A DNA stretch of 64,000 nt, from NCBI GenBank assembly GCA_977017575.1, contig CDRNVI010000170.1:152120-216119 (forward strand). The letters are read 5' to 3'. How positions within the stretch are numbered: position 1 is the first letter of the stretch; each line of letters opens with the position of its first letter. The stretch is from Paramoeba atlantica (lineage: Eukaryota > Protista > Discosea). The notes under the pieces were generated by a model. That model saw only the letters and a list, made by a program, of their open reading frames with translations. It searched no databases and had not been told where the DNA came from. This document shows positions 3,325 to 56,574 of this stretch, in pieces. Position numbers and translations under genes: made by a program.

Positions 3325-3443
3325 GTCTTCGGTCATACCCAGTTGAAAGCACCCGATCCCATCAGAACTCGGAAGTTAAGCAGCTGTGGGCTCGGTTAGT
3401 AGAATGGTGGGTGACCACATTCGAATCCCGAGTGCTGAAGACC
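3325..3443 (+). rRNA. 5S rRNA
   Basis: GTCTTCGGTCATACC...GATCCCATCAGAACTCGGAAGTTAAGC...GAAGACC, 119 nt, terminal helix GTCTTC/GAAGAC, followed by a T-rich tract. Confidence 0.95.
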
Positions 3444-12604: not shown

Positions 12605-12721
12605 TGGTTGAGGTGGGATTCGAACCCACGAACCCGAAGGACCAGAAGACTAAACACTGTATTTTTACAGCCAAGATTTAACTCTTGAGTCTGGCGCGTT
12701 TGACCGCTTCGCTACCCAACC
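12605..12721 (-). tRNA. tRNA-Leu(CAA) with ~36-nt intron after position 37
   Basis: GGTTGGG/CTCAACC acceptor, CCAGA-CTCAAG-[intron]-T-TCTGG anticodon arm, long variable arm, GTTCGAATC. Confidence 0.92.
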
Positions 12722-12733
12722 AGATATACGACA

Positions 12734-13136
12734 ATTACCCTTCAAGAGCACCTTTCTAAAGAGACCACACACACACACAGAGAAGACAATAAAAGACAGG
12801 AGAAGTCCAAAGGGAATGCCACAAAATAATAGTTATGGCTGCACCATAAGACACCATCAGAAGATCCATTGCAGGCATTATGTCATTGAAAACACATCTT
12901 TTCTCCCTCAATGGTCTTGTTGCAGACCCAGAGCCGCACTGATCGCACCACCAACCCTTCCAGTTCCTTCTCATCACTTGAAGCAGAACCATTTCCATAT
13001 TGAGTGATGCATAACACATAGATTGAGCAATCACATGGATTTCATTTCTAATCGCAGCAATGGCACTCAGAGCAGCCACGCCCAAGCCATGAGGACACAT
13101 CCACACTTTCTTTGGCCAAAACCTTTGCAGCGGCAT
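12734..13136 (-). mobile_element. Internally deleted PAT-type relic: B terminal repeat, YR C-terminus and MT fragment
   Basis: 12734-12761 matches the B-repeat end at 23/28; cccagagccgcactgatcgcaccaccaacccttcc matches the YR gene at ~25555; 13090-13130 matches the MT region. Confidence 0.8.
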
Positions 13137-24067: not shown

Positions 24068-24594
24068 CCTACCAAAAAAAAATAAAAAAAAATTAATTTT
24101 GAAGTTCATAAACATCAAAAAACAATTTTTTATGAGCCATCAAAAGTGCACAACACATCACATCATAAAAAAAATTCCGGATTTTTTTTTTTTTGGATAT
24201 TGGCAAAATTGGGTGGGAATTTTGTTGTTTGAGAGTGTGTCAAGGGCTTTGTAGGAGAGAACAATTTTTTTTCAATTTTTTTTTCTTTTCTTATTGGAAT
24301 AAGGTTCTTATAACCCCCTTCTTGTGAGTTTAGTTTTCTCTTCTGTGACTCTGAGAATTTTTTTTTTGGAAGGTCATACCCAAGGTAGTACCAAAAAATC
24401 AATTTTTCTCTTTTGGATTGAGACATTTCACAGATGTTTGGGGGGGGGAAAATTGAGAAAAATATTGTGGTTGATGTGATAAAAAAAGATTTTTAACTTT
24501 CAGTAATCCTCCCTTGAAATCAATGATTCAAAAAGTCACCCGGGAAGGTCACCTCAACGGCAGCAAAAAGTGGATAAAAAAGAAGAAAAAAAAA

Positions 24595-24667
24595 TGGAGA
24601 TGCCGGGTTTCGATCCCGGTACCTTCCGCATGCTAAGCGGACGCGATACCAACTTCGCCACACCCCC
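24595..24667 (-). tRNA. tRNA-Ala(AGC)
   Basis: GGGGGTG/CATCTCC acceptor with G-T at pair 3, TT-AGC-AT loop, ATCGAAA T-loop typical of eukaryotic Ala tRNAs. Confidence 0.95.
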
Positions 24668-25415
24668 TTTTCTTGATAACCCTCCGAGAGTTCCTTTCTA
24701 AAGGAACAAGACTCATGGAGAAGACAAAAGGAGACAGAAACAAGAAAAAAGGAGAGAAAGACAGAAGGAAAAATCCAAAGAGGACTGCACATTTATTCCA
24801 TCCCGACCCACCCTACATGAGCCAAGTGCATTGACATAACAGACAAGCCAAAAGGGCTTGGAAGTGAAATGATCACCAGATCCAAGAAGAATCTGGAAAC
24901 TGAAAGGTTGAATGGTTCTACCCGAGACATGTATCCACACATCTGATGCTCATCGACGAATCCGTACTCCAAAGTGGAGAGTCCAAACGCATAGTCCAAT
25001 GCCAAAGTCCAAGGTGCAAGACCAAGGAGCAAAAGGAAAGAACAAAGGAGAGCAAGCAGCAAGGGTGGGGTGGACGGGATGAACACAAGAAAACAATGTT
25101 CACGAGAACGAAGGAACAAAAAGAAAAGTGAAAAAGAAAGAAGAAAGAAGCGAGAGCGGTGACACTGGTCGAGATTCCAATCTCAGAGACCAACAGGGTC
25201 TGACGTCAGCCACCTTACCAGAAAAAAGGAGACCCCAGGTGAGGGAAAAGTCACCCTCTACAGGTTACCCCGCTTTCCTAATTGGAAAGCGGCCATAACC
25301 CTCCGAGAGTTCCTTTCTAAAGGAACAAGACTCATGGAGAAGACAAAAGGAGACAGAAACAAGAAAAAAGGAGAGAAAGACAGAAGGAAAAATCCAAAGA
25401 GGACTGCACAAATAG

Positions 25416-28247
25416 TTATGGTTGGGTCATGGTCCCTGGTGAGACCATCAAGGAGAAAAGTTCTGTTTTCGACGCCATAATGCCAGCAATGTATCTCCTG
25501 ATAGTGTCCGAGCGCCAGTCTCCACACGTACGGATGACCAATTCAGGGGCTCCGCCCAGAGCTGCACTGATTGCACCGCCAACCCTTCCACTTTTTCCCG
25601 TGAATCTGGAGCCCATGGAAGGATCCACCGCTGCTGCAATGAAGTTGAAAATGGTGCCCATTATGCCAGGGGGAAGAGGAAGCTCTTTCGCATCTGCAAA
25701 CAGTGGGCTTGCATCTGTACCATTTTCGTATCGAGCAATACACAGTAAGTACACAGCGCATGGAAGGCAAAAGGTTCTAATGGAATCCGAAGAGCAAGAC
25801 AAAAGATGCCATGGATTCTGCTTTAAGATCTTATCAGACTTCCTTGCTCTGAGACGTACCCAAACACCACTCTGAGCGAGGTGAACGTCCGAGAGGAGGA
25901 TCTTACCAATTTCACCAGGGCGCAACATTAGACGACAAGCCAACGCAGCGATGACCGCATAGAACTTGGTCGAAGAGGAACCGGTTTCCCATGCAAGGAT
26001 TGCCAAAGACATGGGAAATGGCTGAACATCAGGGAGTTTTCTTGGCACCTTCCTGGCTGCAATGACGACTGACTGATCCACAACTGGTGGGGTAAGGCCG
26101 AGATCTTTGTGAATTCTTCTTACCGCAGAAATGACACTGAGAGCTGCTGCCCCCAGACCATGAGCTAGTTTGGACCGAACATATTCTGACAACACTGCAT
26201 TTGTCGCAGGGAAAGCGCAATAGTCTCTTTCACATGCCCAGGAGTTGAAGGCCGCACATATCGTGAGGTAGCTGGCTCTGGTGGAGGGCTCAAGCGGGTC
26301 ACAAAGAGGTTCGGGCAAAACCAAACTGCTATCCATTTTGTCAATGAAATCTGTGACAGTTCTGTTGAACAACCGACCGGTTGATGCATTGTTCCTGACG
26401 TCCAATCCAAAGTGAGCAGCCAAGCGCTTCCACGTAACAGGGGTTGTAACCACGGACATTTCCACAACGGCACAACGACCAGGGCATGTGTTTGAGATTC
26501 GAAGAGAGTTGCTAATGCTGGTGCAATTATACTCAGAGGGGGACACATCCACGCTTTCTGTGGCCAAGTTTTTGCAAATGCATTGACGCCTGCACTGTTT
26601 GGACAAAGGGTCATTGAGAAGAAGCAAGGAACAACCGCTGACAGATTGCAGGCGAACAGATCCATGTCTAGGGGGGGAACAATGCTCAGCAGAAGTGACC
26701 AAACCCAAGGTAACGTCATCCAAGATCCCCGATCATTGAGACAAGAAGGAGCGTCGGCTGGATTTATTGCTGACGGGATGTAACAAGGATTCCACAAATG
26801 CAGATCGTTCCGTAGGAGAAGAAGAACGGCCTTTCTTGCTATTGAGTCCAGAAAATCGTTCCTGCTTCCCCCCTTCTTTAGAGCATAAAGAGCCACCACA
26901 TTGTCTATGAGAGGTTGGATTGTGTTGCCCCTCCGAATCACCTTCAGGTTGAGGGAAGTCTGTATTGCCTCCATGAAAGCCAAGAGTTCCAGTGCTGCAA
27001 TGGAGAACATTGCTGTCTCGTCGCTGAACCGGCTTGCCACTGAGATTGTACCTTCCTCTGCATCTATCACAAATCCCCATCCCGTCCAACATTCTGACTT
27101 GGAAGCATCTGAGACAACGATCTTGGTTTGTAGAGGGCGGGAGAATGGCCTCCCATTGTTCTCGTAAATCTGAGTCCAGAGAAAGGTCAGGATTGCGATT
27201 GTCATTGGTGGAACCACCACGTAAGAATCCCACATCCATGTAGGTCTCAGAATCCTCAAGGGTTTTCGTGCTGGGCTGGCAATCTTGACAATGTCCAACA
27301 CTGGTGCCAGAGAAGTTAGCGTCCCCATCACTTTGGCAAGTTGCCAGGCTGTGACATTCCCTAAGAGCAAGAGAGCAATTGTGTTTTCGATGACTGCGAG
27401 TGCCTTTGCCTTTCTTGCTTCTGTTATGAACAGCATGGAGATCGTCGAGTCTATTCTGAGGCCCATGTACACCAGATTCTGAGTTGGAGTCAATTTGCAC
27501 TTGTGAAAGGCAATCTTGAAACCCAGATTCTCGAAGAAGGGGAGAATGAAACCGCGAACCATATGGTCCAGAAAGAGAGGAGAAGAAGCTGTCATTAGAA
27601 AGTCGTCGACCCACACCAGAATGGACACTCCTGGGCACAGGACTCGAAGGATCTTTGCAAGTTCCAGAGAGGTTTTGGCTGCAACAAAAGCTGAGATCTT
27701 GAATCTGAACATTGTGGCTAGGAACAGGAAGAATTTCTCGTTCAGCTGAAAGCCCATCCACTGTTGGCTGTCTTGGTGGAGCATGAAGTGGAGATAAAAA
27801 TCGCTCAGATCGATGGTCACCATGTAAGCATCCTTGGGAATCACCATGGAGAAGAATGGGATCACTTTGAGCCTCAACTTCTGATACAGGGAATAAAGTT
27901 TGTCCACTCGTGTACCCACAACAACCAGTCTCAGAGTCTTGCACGGGCACGAACCACTCTTGGGTGCAGTCTTGAGAGCGTTTACAGCGAAGGGGGGAGA
28001 GCTGACCTCCTTCACCACAGAAAGACGACGAAGTCTCTGAATTTTGTTTGTGACAAAAGCAGTGTGTTCCACCGGAAACTTGTTCTGAGCATGAAAAGGC
28101 TGAGCACTGGCATTTATCGGGATGCGTACCCCTGTGTTGACCCACTCCAGGACATCTGAAGGTAGAGGTAACGTGTTCCAAACACTTCGACGACTGTGCA
28201 ATCGTGCTGGAAGGTTGGTTCGGCTTGGGAGGGGATGAAGCGAGCAA
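25416..28247 (-). CDS. Tyrosine recombinase frame overlapping RT; one in-frame TGA at 26733-26735
   Basis: LMLRPGEI, GKSGRVGGA, GDWRSDTIRRY; track ORFs 26733-28247 and 25416-26723 share one frame. Confidence 0.9.
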
Positions 28248-28288
28248 AAGGGGGCTCTTGGCAGCGTCATAACCCTCAACCAGGCCAA
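26165..28288 (-). CDS. DIRS RT-RNase H-methyltransferase ORF
   Basis: TIDLSDFY, WVDDFLM, VSDASKS, DNVVALYAL, NPADAPS, DLFA...NAFAKTW...WMCPP. Confidence 0.93.
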   Translation of the reverse strand: MAWLRVMTLPRAPFCSLHPLPSRTNLPARLHSRRSVWNTLPLPSDVLEWVNTGVRIPINASAQPFHAQNKFPVEHTAFVTNKIQRLRRLSVVKEVSSPPFAVNALKTAPKSGSCPCKTLRLVVVGTRVDKLYSLYQKLRLKVIPFFSMVIPKDAYMVTIDLSDFYLHFMLHQDSQQWMGFQLNEKFFLFLATMFRFKISAFVAAKTSLELAKILRVLCPGVSILVWVDDFLMTASSPLFLDHMVRGFILPFFENLGFKIAFHKCKLTPTQNLVYMGLRIDSTISMLFITEARKAKALAVIENTIALLLLGNVTAWQLAKVMGTLTSLAPVLDIVKIASPARKPLRILRPTWMWDSYVVVPPMTIAILTFLWTQIYENNGRPFSRPLQTKIVVSDASKSECWTGWGFVIDAEEGTISVASRFSDETAMFSIAALELLAFMEAIQTSLNLKVIRRGNTIQPLIDNVVALYALKKGGSRNDFLDSIARKAVLLLLRNDLHLWNPCYIPSAINPADAPSCLNDRGSWMTLPWVWSLLLSIVPPLDMDLFACNLSAVVPCFFSMTLCPNSAGVNAFAKTWPQKAWMCPPLSIIAPALATLFESQTHALVVVPLWKCPWLQPLLRGSAWLLTLDWTSGTMHQPVGCSTELSQISLTKWIAVWFCPNLFVTRLSPPPEPATSRYVRPSTPGHVKETIALSLRQMQCCQNMFGPN

Positions 28289-28389
28289 AGGGTCAGGAAT
28301 GATCCTCAGAAGAGGAAGAACTAGAGGAGGAAGCCCTGTTGCGTGACTTCCTGCGCTTCCTACGACTCTTCTTTTTCACCACAGTTGTA

Positions 28390-29400
28390 TCAGATGACCG
28401 GGGGGGGAGTCGGCACAGGCGACGCCACGACTGGAGGCATTTGATACGGACCAGGGAACTGAGGGGGGAAAGGTGGCCAGAAACCCATGGGGAAAGAAGG
28501 AACTGCTGGACCAGGAACTTGGTTCAAAGAACCATTGATCTGGTTCAAAGCTTGCTCAGCCGACTTTGGGACAACCAGAGCAGGCGCCGCCGCAGCCTTG
28601 GCCTTATTAGGGCAACTTCTAGAAGAGTGACCACTTTCGCCGCAGGAGAAACAACCTTTTTTGTTTGGTCTGGCAGTAGTGATACCGCGCGCAGGAAGGG
28701 CAAGGTCCCACCCTCTCAAATCAGCGTCACAAAGTAAGTCCGCACAAACCCGAATAAACTGGCTCAGGAACTTAGCATAGTGACCAGGATTTCCACCTGA
28801 CGCGGCTTCCTCGAGGACCTTCTCCACGAGAGCATCACAAGTACGGAGGACAGACAATTCATTGACATTTCTTGCTGCCTTCTTCGATGTGGCCCACGTC
28901 TCCCAACGATTGAGAGGCTCAAACTGAGGCCAGGTGAAAGGGTTGTCCAAAATATACGACCGCGCGGGGTCATGTTTAAGTGTAGAACGACCACAAGTCG
29001 GTTTGATGAAACCAGGAGGAGGAATTTGCAAGGACAAGCCAGGAATTTCGTTCGACCCAGCTGGCGTACACAACTGTGGCGAAGGGGAGGGGGAAGGAGC
29101 GGGAGCACTCAATGTATTCTGACCAAAGTTGGGAGAAGACGAGGGAGGGTCCAGAGGAGACCACGTCGAGCATGTAGAAGATGAGGAGGAGGAGATACCA
29201 GAACCTGGAGACAGGTTGCTTGAGGGTGGGGTTGACAACAAAGACAAGTTGAGACCGCTTGGATCCCTGTCCACAACAGTTTGGAGCAAACTAGTGAGAG
29301 CATCAAACCGCTTTTCCAAGGAAGCAAGACGATCAGCGGGTTGTGTGGCATCGCCCATCGCGACCTCGTATTCGGTATCAGAATCGTGAGTGTCTGACAT
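28390..29400 (-). CDS. DIRS gag with CCHC zinc knuckle
   Basis: CFSCGESGHSSRSC; likely ATG start at 29400 (MSDTHDSD). Confidence 0.88.
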   Translation of the reverse strand: MSDTHDSDTEYEVAMGDATQPADRLASLEKRFDALTSLLQTVVDRDPSGLNLSLLSTPPSSNLSPGSGISSSSSSTCSTWSPLDPPSSSPNFGQNTLSAPAPSPSPSPQLCTPAGSNEIPGLSLQIPPPGFIKPTCGRSTLKHDPARSYILDNPFTWPQFEPLNRWETWATSKKAARNVNELSVLRTCDALVEKVLEEAASGGNPGHYAKFLSQFIRVCADLLCDADLRGWDLALPARGITTARPNKKGCFSCGESGHSSRSCPNKAKAAAAPALVVPKSAEQALNQINGSLNQVPGPAVPSFPMGFWPPFPPQFPGPYQMPPVVASPVPTPPPVI

Positions 29401-30158
29401 CGTAGTACACAATACGGCCAAACAGAAAAACAAAGGGTAAAAAAGGCACTAGGCAACAAAAAACCCAATAAACAGAACACAAAAAACCAATAGCATCAGG
29501 CTCACGAACGGAACACAAGAAAACAACGTTCACGAGAACGAAGGAACAAAAAGAAAAGTGAAAAAGAAAGAAGAAAGAAGTGAGAGCGGTGACACTGGTC
29601 GAGATTCCAATCTCAGAGACCAACAGGGTCTGACGTCAGCCACCTTACCAGAAAAAAGGAGACCCCGGGTGAGGGAAAAGTCACCCTCTACAGGTTACCC
29701 CGCTTTCCTAATTGGAAAGCGGCCAAAAGTTGAAGCAAAGATTGAATGTCTTTCATTTTCAGATCCCCTTGACCAGAAAAGAGGTTTTCCATTTTGAGGC
29801 TGTGAAGAGAGCCTCCAGCAAGAAATGAGAAGAATGTCCATCAAGAAGAAGGATGACTGGTTTATCTTTTTGTCTGGCAATTTTGTTTTTCCAAGCAATG
29901 AAGAGGAGCATATTAATCTTCCCAACTTTCTAGCAGTTCAGCCATGTTAACACGGAGGTCATGAACAATGACCAAAGTGTCAAAGCATGGATAAGTCATA
30001 AAGGTGTTTTTATTGGTTGTTTCACCAAAAGAGTTTGTTTGCCGAAGTCGGCTTGATGAAAAGTTGCTAGAATTATCAACCAATAAAAACATGTCACATC
30101 AACCAAATCACTTTCATCCAACAATTTGCCATCGATAGGGAGAGGTGGGAGGGTCACA

Positions 30159-30236
30159 AACTTATCCATGCTTTGACACTTCGGTCATTGTTCATGACCT
30201 CTGTGTTAACAAAGCATGGTAAGTCATAAAGGTGTT
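30159..30236. repeat. Internal complementary region (ICR)
   Basis: 30159-30209 is the reverse complement of 29946-29996; 30211-30236 is the reverse complement of 34843-34868. Confidence 0.9.
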
Positions 30237-56455: not shown

Positions 56456-56574
56456 GTCTTCGGTCATACCCAGTTGAAAGCACCCGATCCCATCAGAACT
56501 CGGAAGTTAAGCAGCTGTGGGCTCGGTTAGTAGAATGGTGGGTGACCACATTCGAATCCCGAGTGCTGAAGACC
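56456..56574 (+). rRNA. 5S rRNA (identical to 3325-3443)
   Basis: Base-by-base comparison shows no difference. Confidence 0.95.

Follow-up and report, generated by a model that had tools for sequence, protein, structure and literature searches.

A candidate tRNA-gene-targeted tyrosine-recombinase retrotransposon in Paramoeba atlantica

Tyrosine integrases of phages and of integrative and conjugative elements that use a tRNA gene as attB place a circular element at that gene without a duplication; they recombine through a stretch of identity that the element shares with the 3′ part of one given tRNA gene. Among eukaryotic elements, Ty3 of Saccharomyces cerevisiae (Metaviridae) integrates within a few nucleotides of the RNA polymerase III (Pol III) start, whatever the identity of the tRNA gene (PMC5911963); DGLT-A, TRE5-A and TRE3-A of the amoebozoan Dictyostelium evolved tRNA targeting independently in compact genomes (PMC5006619); and the Dada DNA transposons are specialised on tRNA and small nuclear RNA genes (PMC8869645). 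For DIRS-1, a tyrosine-recombinase retrotransposon, the reported targets are its own copies at centromeres and not tRNA genes (PMC5006619). Here we describe a 64,000-nt stretch of P. atlantica DNA (contig CDRNVI010000170.1, positions 152,120 to 216,119 of the forward strand; hereafter the window), in which a 5049-nt element with the termini TGGCCGC...GGGTTA lies on the - strand directly upstream of a tRNA-Ala gene. We consider it very probable that this is a DIRS-order retrotransposon with PAT-like split direct repeats, whose Cre-like tyrosine recombinase would insert it precisely, in one orientation and without a target-site duplication (TSD), into a 13-nt slot at the 5′ boundaries of tRNA genes of any isoacceptor type.

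The window element resembles Ty3 in its position-specific insertion at tRNA genes irrespective of their identity; however, the enzyme of Ty3 is a retroviral DDE integrase, which is tethered to TFIIIB and leaves a 5-bp duplication, whereas the window element has a tyrosine recombinase, no duplication and a strictly fixed orientation. DGLT-A and the TRE elements differ from it in being Ty3/gypsy or non-long-terminal-repeat elements whose insertions lie tens of nucleotides up- or downstream, and Dada differs in its DDE transposase, its sequence-specific insertion inside the RNA gene and the absence of reverse transcription. Insertion at a tRNA gene without duplication is shared with the phage-type integrases, but the family of the window element lies at the 5′ boundary, is found at seven tRNA species and has at most 1–3 nt of sequence in common with its targets. 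With PAT (of Panagrellus) and DIRS-1 it shares gag, reverse transcriptase (RT) and RNase H, a candidate methyltransferase-like region, a tyrosine recombinase, split direct repeats with a B1/A2 junction and the lack of a TSD, and the overlap of the recombinase frame with the RT frame is like that of DIRS-1 (ORF2/ORF3 overlap, PMC5006619). It differs from both in that the searchable papers report neither a tRNA nor a Pol III preference for PAT or DIRS-1, and in that its clade has KxxR and not HxxR in the recombinase. The original prediction had termed the element PAT-type; its structure (split direct repeats) and a methyltransferase-like lead agree with this term, the support for which is structural rather than phylogenetic.

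Insertion sites at tRNA genes

The proposal that a tyrosine-recombinase retrotransposon targets tRNA genes is supported by the insertion census, by the evidence on the recombinase and by the split-direct-repeat layout. At the window locus, the element is co-oriented with tRNA-Ala as predicted, here with a spacing of 9 nt (24668–24676). Its left flank reads ...CAACTTT and then TGGCCGC, and its right end GGGTTA is followed by TCAAGAAAA and then the tRNA. When the flanks are rejoined, they give TCAACTTTTCAAGAAAA and then the tRNA, so that the predicted rebuilding of a continuous leader and tRNA could be checked against occurring sequences: the uninterrupted CAACTTTTCAAGAAAA followed by the tRNA is present at five unoccupied tRNA-Ala paralogues in the same genome (L013–L017), at one of which the flank is 100% identical over 262 nt. 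Because the exact rejoined sequence exists at these empty paralogues, we conclude that no TSD was made and no target base was lost. A single T is common to both ends and to the internal B1/A2 junction (GGGTTA-T-GGCCGC), as had been claimed; this T (24676 or 29725), ambiguous in the window copy alone, is assigned to the 5′ end of the element by the empty/filled pair at tRNA-Asp. Filled and empty sites are also equal in length for Asp, Glu, Ile, Asn and Thr, and thus show neither TSD nor deletion. Together with Ala, six targets therefore display the absence of a TSD that characterises the DIRS order, and the precise joint at empty paralogous sites agrees with the predicted mode of insertion by a tyrosine recombinase.

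The empty-site joint 24675|29725 occurs, with one ambiguous letter, in contigs of four public sequencing runs. Insertion polymorphism or recent movement was considered for these joints and dropped, since five identical paralogous empty sites explain them. In a contig of run X4, the B end (window 25298) is joined to about 30 nt that have no match in the reference genome even with 2 mismatches; this loose end may mark an insertion site private to that sample.

For the census, the 45.7-Mb genome was searched with the A and B repeats of the element; all of the 13 A and 11 B matches were scored, repeats and tRNAs were mapped at every matched locus, and duplicates were collapsed to independent insertions. 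Full copies were found at tRNA-Ala (the window copy, -9 relative to tRNA +1) and tRNA-Thr (L001, between tRNA nucleotides 2 and 3); solo A-X-B copies, in which A and B flank the spacer X, at tRNA-Asp (L002, -7), tRNA-Glu (L003, -9) and tRNA-His (L005, -1/+1); and A-internal-B copies at tRNA-Ile (L004, -8) and tRNA-Asn (L008, -9). Without exception, copies with an intact 3′ end, or with one interrupted solely within the tRNA gene, have a co-oriented tRNA and lie in the slot from -10 to +3 of the mature tRNA 5′ end, that is, at a fixed distance from tRNA genes of differing identity, as in the Pol III-targeting class. An outcome in which most copies lay away from tRNA genes, or had only an AT-rich target motif in common, did not occur. 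The 3′-truncated L009 and the diverged, rearranged and 3′-truncated L010 stood outside the scoring. The insertions amount to 7–8 independent events: seven tRNA species in the main family, and an eighth (Leu) in a diverged subfamily.

The Leu event corresponds to a second copy that had been predicted upstream of tRNA-Leu. It is indeed upstream of tRNA-Leu(CAA) and co-oriented with it, at a distance of 10–13 nt (position about -10), but it is only a decayed remnant of about 300 nt belonging to the diverged subfamily. Its B-like end is also found at a B/A junction in L010. This tRNA-Leu(CAA) gene was missed by default ARAGORN and detected in intron mode. As for the Thr event, rejoining the flanks in L001 restores the GGCTCCA acceptor of the intact, unoccupied Thr gene in L005; the insertion destroys a tRNA-Thr acceptor stem.

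Could these insertions be copies of one another? If segmental duplication of tRNA arrays had multiplied just one or two ancestral insertions, the census would be spurious, and part of the data fits this: the arrays are highly duplicated, and L006, L007, L008 and L009 share flanks or junctions and stem from one tRNA-Asn insertion. In L008 the D arm of this tRNA-Asn is interrupted by a further insertion, about 630 nt long (L008 2303–2936; G000:C170, ~56.8–57.4 kb); L006 and L007 are deletion derivatives in which B position 85 is joined to the same D-arm point, and L009 is a 5′ fragment that shares the flank. However, seven tRNA species with unrelated flanks are left after the duplicates have been collapsed, and each target has a matching empty paralogue except His, for which none was found in this genome. 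We thus regard duplication as a scarcely credible source of the pattern as a whole. A second possibility is that insertion is untargeted or weakly targeted and that selection retained the harmless copies beside tRNA genes. In favour of such a safe haven, the tRNA arrays are gene-poor and host many other elements in the genome, but selection cannot account for precise junctions, always in the one orientation and within a 13-nt slot, at 7–8 different tRNA genes. Other array DNA, equally harmless, is unused, and one insertion ruins the tRNA-Thr acceptor stem; this explanation is very improbable. At the tRNA density of the window (12 per 64 kb), the chance of a co-oriented placement in a 13-nt slot is 1.2e-3 per insertion, and the chance of seven such events is 4e-21 even at tRNA-array density.

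The solo A-X-B form occurs at three loci and the A-internal-B form at L004, L008 and probably L012, a locus in another assembly. Both forms would result if A1 recombined with A2 or B1 with B2, and would be equally expected from action of the recombinase on the internal junction and an element end. Two of the remaining copies show further rearrangement. In L009, near 6470 (G000:C144, ~52.47 kb), the element is broken off after about 500 nt into DNA that starts with two and a half TTTAGGG repeats, and run X1 has a loose end matching this break. In L010 (6616–7054; G000:C143; 88%), a recombinase fragment, B, A and gag follow one another, with internal sequence after the B/A junction in place of X-B2, which suggests either that copies are arranged head to tail or that the same tRNA-Leu-type site was hit a second time.

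Structure and coding capacity

On the - strand the element reads A1-gag-RT/RNase H/methyltransferase-like-recombinase-B1A2-X-B2 (Table 1). The arrangement A1...B1A2...B2, the hallmark of PAT-like split direct repeats, is present in full. As detected by the repeat search, the A repeats are 218 nt long with 98% identity between A1 and A2, and the B repeats 116 nt with 100% identity between B1 and B2; their boundaries were re-set afterwards from the sequence and from the comparisons of empty and filled sites. B1 abuts A2, and their junction (GGGTTA-T-GGCCGC) is the internal image of the circle junction. An AATAAA at 24792–24797, at the 3′ end of X just before B2, is likely a poly(A) signal. Because it directly precedes B2, transcripts may end inside B2, which fits the standard idea for DIRS elements that the ends are rebuilt from B1A2. 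The alternative that the transcript 3′ end is made by RNase P cleavage of the downstream tRNA is disfavoured by the same signal. A search for ribozymes or other structured RNA at the element ends (Rfam, E<=1, over 24500–29900) gave tRNA only.

Table 1. Features of the element, its target and related sites in the window
Feature	Position	Strand	Evidence
Retrotransposon, whole (very probable)	24677–29725	-	repeats; empty sites L013–L017; joint 24675|29725
tRNA-Ala(AGC), target gene	24595–24667	-	ARAGORN; Rfam tRNA 56.7 bits
tRNA leader between element end GGGTTA and tRNA +1, 9 nt	24668–24676	-	sequence; empty-site paralogues
A1, 5′ terminal repeat	29511–29725	-	repeat search; BLAST
Open reading frame (ORF) 1, gag-like, CCHC zinc knuckle	28390–29400	-	ORF list; Pfam zf-CCHC 24.8 bits (cut-off 20.8)
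ORF2, predicted RT/RNase H with C-terminal methyltransferase-like part	26165–28288	-	Pfam RVT_1; frame kept in relatives
ORF3, C-terminal part, predicted tyrosine recombinase, 435 aa	25416–26723	-	Cre alignment; catalytic residues; AlphaFold
B1, internal copy of 3′ terminal repeat	25296–25410	-	repeat search
Hairpin/cruciform across B/A junction	25262–25301	-	strand folding vs shuffles
A2, internal copy of 5′ terminal repeat	25081–25295	-	repeat search; sequence
X, unique spacer between A2 and B2, 289 nt	24792–25080	-	sequence; BLAST
B2, 3′ terminal repeat	24677–24791	-	repeat search
tRNA-Leu(CAA), intron-bearing	12605–12721	-	Rfam tRNA 49 bits; ARAGORN intron mode
Decayed remnant (~300 nt) of diverged subfamily, recombinase C-terminal fragments and B-like end GGGTAATTG	12732–13029	-	tblastn; sequence
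tRNA-Glu(TTC), unoccupied, paralogue of filled site in L003	5773–5845	+	
tRNA-Asn, unoccupied, paralogue of filled site in L006/L008	13167–13241	-	
tRNA-Asp, unoccupied, paralogue of filled site in L002	14194–14265	+	
tRNA-Ile, unoccupied, paralogue of filled site in L004	15776–15850	-	

ORF2 (707 aa) matches Pfam RVT_1 at E=1.1e-6 with 28.9 bits, just under the cut-off of 29.6. Its frame is kept at 28–42% identity over about 690 aa in the relatives L018, L019, L020 and L011, and precomputed PF00078 annotations exist on two relatives that share the frame. ORF2 is a predicted reverse transcriptase, as expected of a member of the DIRS order. The C-terminal part of ORF2 carries motifs resembling those of methyltransferases (DLFA..PP..VPLW), and for its last 208 aa the nearest cluster in language-model features is a eukaryotic one with PF05869 Dam (score 0.93; 200 of 256 features shared); no Pfam match to this region was obtained even at E<=10, and we treat the methyltransferase-like identity as a lead only. 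Such a domain between RNase H and the tyrosine recombinase is not known from Ngaro and VIPER. No Pfam match to rve or to a protease was found in the scanned ORFs of the element.

The recombinase ORF likewise had no Pfam match even at E<=10. In a PDB sequence search, it matched only Cre and Xer recombinases (best E = 3.8e-4), and the alignment with Cre places LRPGE on R173, GKSGRVGG on H289/R292, W on W315 and RRY on Y324. When the window recombinase was aligned with 11 relatives, R141, K168, R253, W276 and Y284 proved invariant, and the catalytic signature across the relatives is R..K..(K/H)xxR..W..Y, in which the histidine of HxxR is replaced by K in the clade of the window element and kept as H in more distant members. 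An AlphaFold model of the protein (mean predicted local distance difference test, 82.9) matches Cre over its whole length, with a template-modelling (TM) score of 0.71 and E 7e-11; the top 33 PDB matches are Cre or Cre-derived chains (TM up to 0.73), followed by XerA, lambda Int, XerH, IntI and the Tn1549 integrase. On the strength of sequence and predicted fold, we interpret the last ORF as encoding a real, Cre-like tyrosine recombinase with an intact catalytic signature.

The recombinase core starts near a Met at 26342, and ORF3 overlaps the end of ORF2 in another frame. With this core included, the recombinase frame is open for about 940 codons across the RT frame, up to 28247, with one stop at 26733–26735 in the window copy; in copy L001 it runs for 958 codons without a stop. 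A frame of about 940–990 codons that ends in the recombinase and spans the RT frame is in fact seen in three diverged families (window 28247–25416 (-) and L001; L018; L060 2916–5891). The N-terminal 500 aa of this long frame are poorly conserved and rich in S, R and G, and are putatively coding.

The element sits in mixed array DNA of ribosomal DNA, 5S and tRNA genes at the contig end. In the window there are a complete ribosomal DNA unit (large-subunit, 5.8S and a 2.1-kb small-subunit gene) at 41083–47904 (-), two identical 5S genes at 3325–3443 (+) and 56456–56574 (+), and 12 tRNA genes. Just upstream of the element, at 29945–30211, two inverted repeats of 52 nt are separated by 163 nt and are 96% complementary; copies of the arm are found at other places in the genome, in both orientations, so that the pair looks like a small element resembling miniature inverted-repeat transposable elements. 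A distant RT-like stretch at 32433–33224 (-), with 21% identity to ORF2 over 274 aa, presumably belongs to another retroelement.

Target recognition and relatives

How might the element find tRNA genes? In most sampled tRNA genes, positions of about -12 to -7 are taken up by a T-run and a following CA(A), and the conserved tRNA-upstream motif that had been predicted is therefore real. In five of the seven insertions the insertion point, TTT^(T)CA or TTC^TTCG, falls where the T-run ends on its 3′ side, and T is found at -3 in all seven targets. Given that tyrosine recombinases are classically sequence-specific, it could be argued that the T-run/CAA of the tRNA leader acts as an att-like site recognised as DNA sequence, that no Pol III machinery takes part, and that the association with tRNA is a by-product. 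This explanation is in our view unlikely. In the window only 3 of the 88 occurrences of TTTTCAA, and 4 of the 163 of TTTCAA, are upstream of a tRNA, yet no copy of the family lies at a non-tRNA instance of the motif. Moreover, the Thr (TGG^CTCC) and His (TAT^GCTG) targets are without the motif and still lie at the tRNA 5′ end, and the bases past the motif, which are the tRNA 5′ ends, vary between targets. Because the motif is abundant away from tRNA genes, and because the Thr and His sites lack it, we favour the Pol III initiation complex, or DNA distorted by it, as the guide.

We therefore return to the reading in which the recombinase is directed to the 5′ boundaries of tRNA genes, for which the following course of events may be proposed. 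The element would be reverse-transcribed, with the internal B1/A2 junction serving to rebuild its ends. Target DNA would then recombine with the B|A junction GGGTTA|TGGCCGC, located inside a conserved hairpin-forming palindrome. The choice of target would depend mainly on the initiation complex of Pol III, or on DNA that this complex melts or bends, and not on DNA sequence alone, and T-rich microhomology (T at -3, usually TTT^T/C) would subsequently set the exact crossover. TFIIIB or TFIIIC might be involved in the choice of target. The solo A-X-B and A-internal-B copies would be later products, made when the duplicated A or B repeats recombine or when recombination takes place at the internal junction.

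A more radical variant concerns the hairpin itself. It forms around a perfect 9-bp palindrome, where the final bases of B pair with part of A; the predicted folding is stronger than in any of 200 shuffles (z = -5.1, 0/200), and the same design, in unrelated sequence, is present in L011 (z = -4.2). One study reports that DIRS-1 intermediates consist mostly of single-stranded cDNA (PMC7192593). Because the hairpin is conserved in design and DIRS-1 intermediates are reportedly mostly single-stranded, a model is allowed in which the recombinase reads no DNA sequence and the folded B/A hairpin of a single-stranded cDNA recombines with the melted Pol III open complex at the tRNA start, as in integron-attC or CTX-phage recombination, here in a eukaryotic retrotransposon. 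If true, the 13-nt slot would be accounted for, and so would the strict orientation, although we hold it to be a rather doubtful proposition.

Relatives of the element help to delimit the phenomenon. In L012, the closest foreign relative with usable flanks (53–57% identity), the element is located about 12 nt upstream of a co-oriented tRNA-His, and a second, empty tRNA-His is on the same contig. The closer relatives P0004, P0005 and P0007 were left out of target scoring, their contigs being too short or ending at the element. A second PAT-like family in the P. atlantica genome, with 28% recombinase identity, comprises a full copy (L060 1484–6483; G000:C164:157983–162982) and a solo copy (G000:C150:70063–70522); it looks intact, its A repeats being 100% identical over 232 nt and its B 51 nt long, and neither of its two copies adjoins a tRNA or other Rfam RNA. 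Among 39 distant relatives on metagenome contigs (23–43% identity), none has a tRNA nearby. A tRNA-like stretch suspected downstream of the L011 element was supported neither by ARAGORN nor by Rfam at E<=10. Because L012 is at a tRNA gene and other relatives are not, targeting appears to be a property of the window family, extending perhaps to a small clade beyond it.

Several observations weigh against targeting by way of the Pol III machinery, or against an active element. The T-run/CA(A) context is common to five of the seven insertions; the contribution of the DNA motif is real and could exceed the credit given to it here. The slot at about -10 to +3 coincides with where Pol III is expected to initiate, the start sites being assumed, and the targeting itself is deduced from DNA sequence. 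There are only about 7–8 independent events, all within tRNA-rich arrays. In place of the HxxR of most tyrosine recombinases, the recombinase shows KxxR, and the window copy carries a stop in the long ORF3 frame. The joints in the public runs are explicable by paralogues and do not support recent mobility. Finally, L011 (47–49% identity), the next relative after L012, is not beside a tRNA recognisable by ARAGORN or by Rfam at E<=10.

Precedent and significance

The original prediction knew of no precedent in the DIRS order, and this has held: in the searchable full-text literature, dedicated reviews included, we found no DIRS-order element with a tRNA or Pol III preference (Repbase and subscription reviews of DIRS elements were outside this scope), and the 2018 review of Pol III targeting names DIRS only as a class (PMC5911963). 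Precedence of the present case is probable, not certain. The order of elements is known; the target specificity within it is new.

Mobile elements have repeatedly evolved ways of landing safely at tRNA genes, in the known cases via DDE integrases (Ty1, Ty3, DGLT-A), target-primed reverse transcription (TRE) and DDE transposases (Dada). If true, the case of a tyrosine-recombinase retrotransposon would add a fourth, chemically unrelated integration machinery to this convergence. A Cre-like enzyme that is steered by a protein complex or by DNA structure, and not by an extended recognition sequence, would, if confirmed, be of interest to recombinase engineers. With both the junction (GGGTTA|TGGCCGC) and the target known, DIRS integration, a step not known to have been reconstituted, would become open to study. 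For the poorly understood DIRS order, this would also be the first defined target in a genome other than the elements' own copies.

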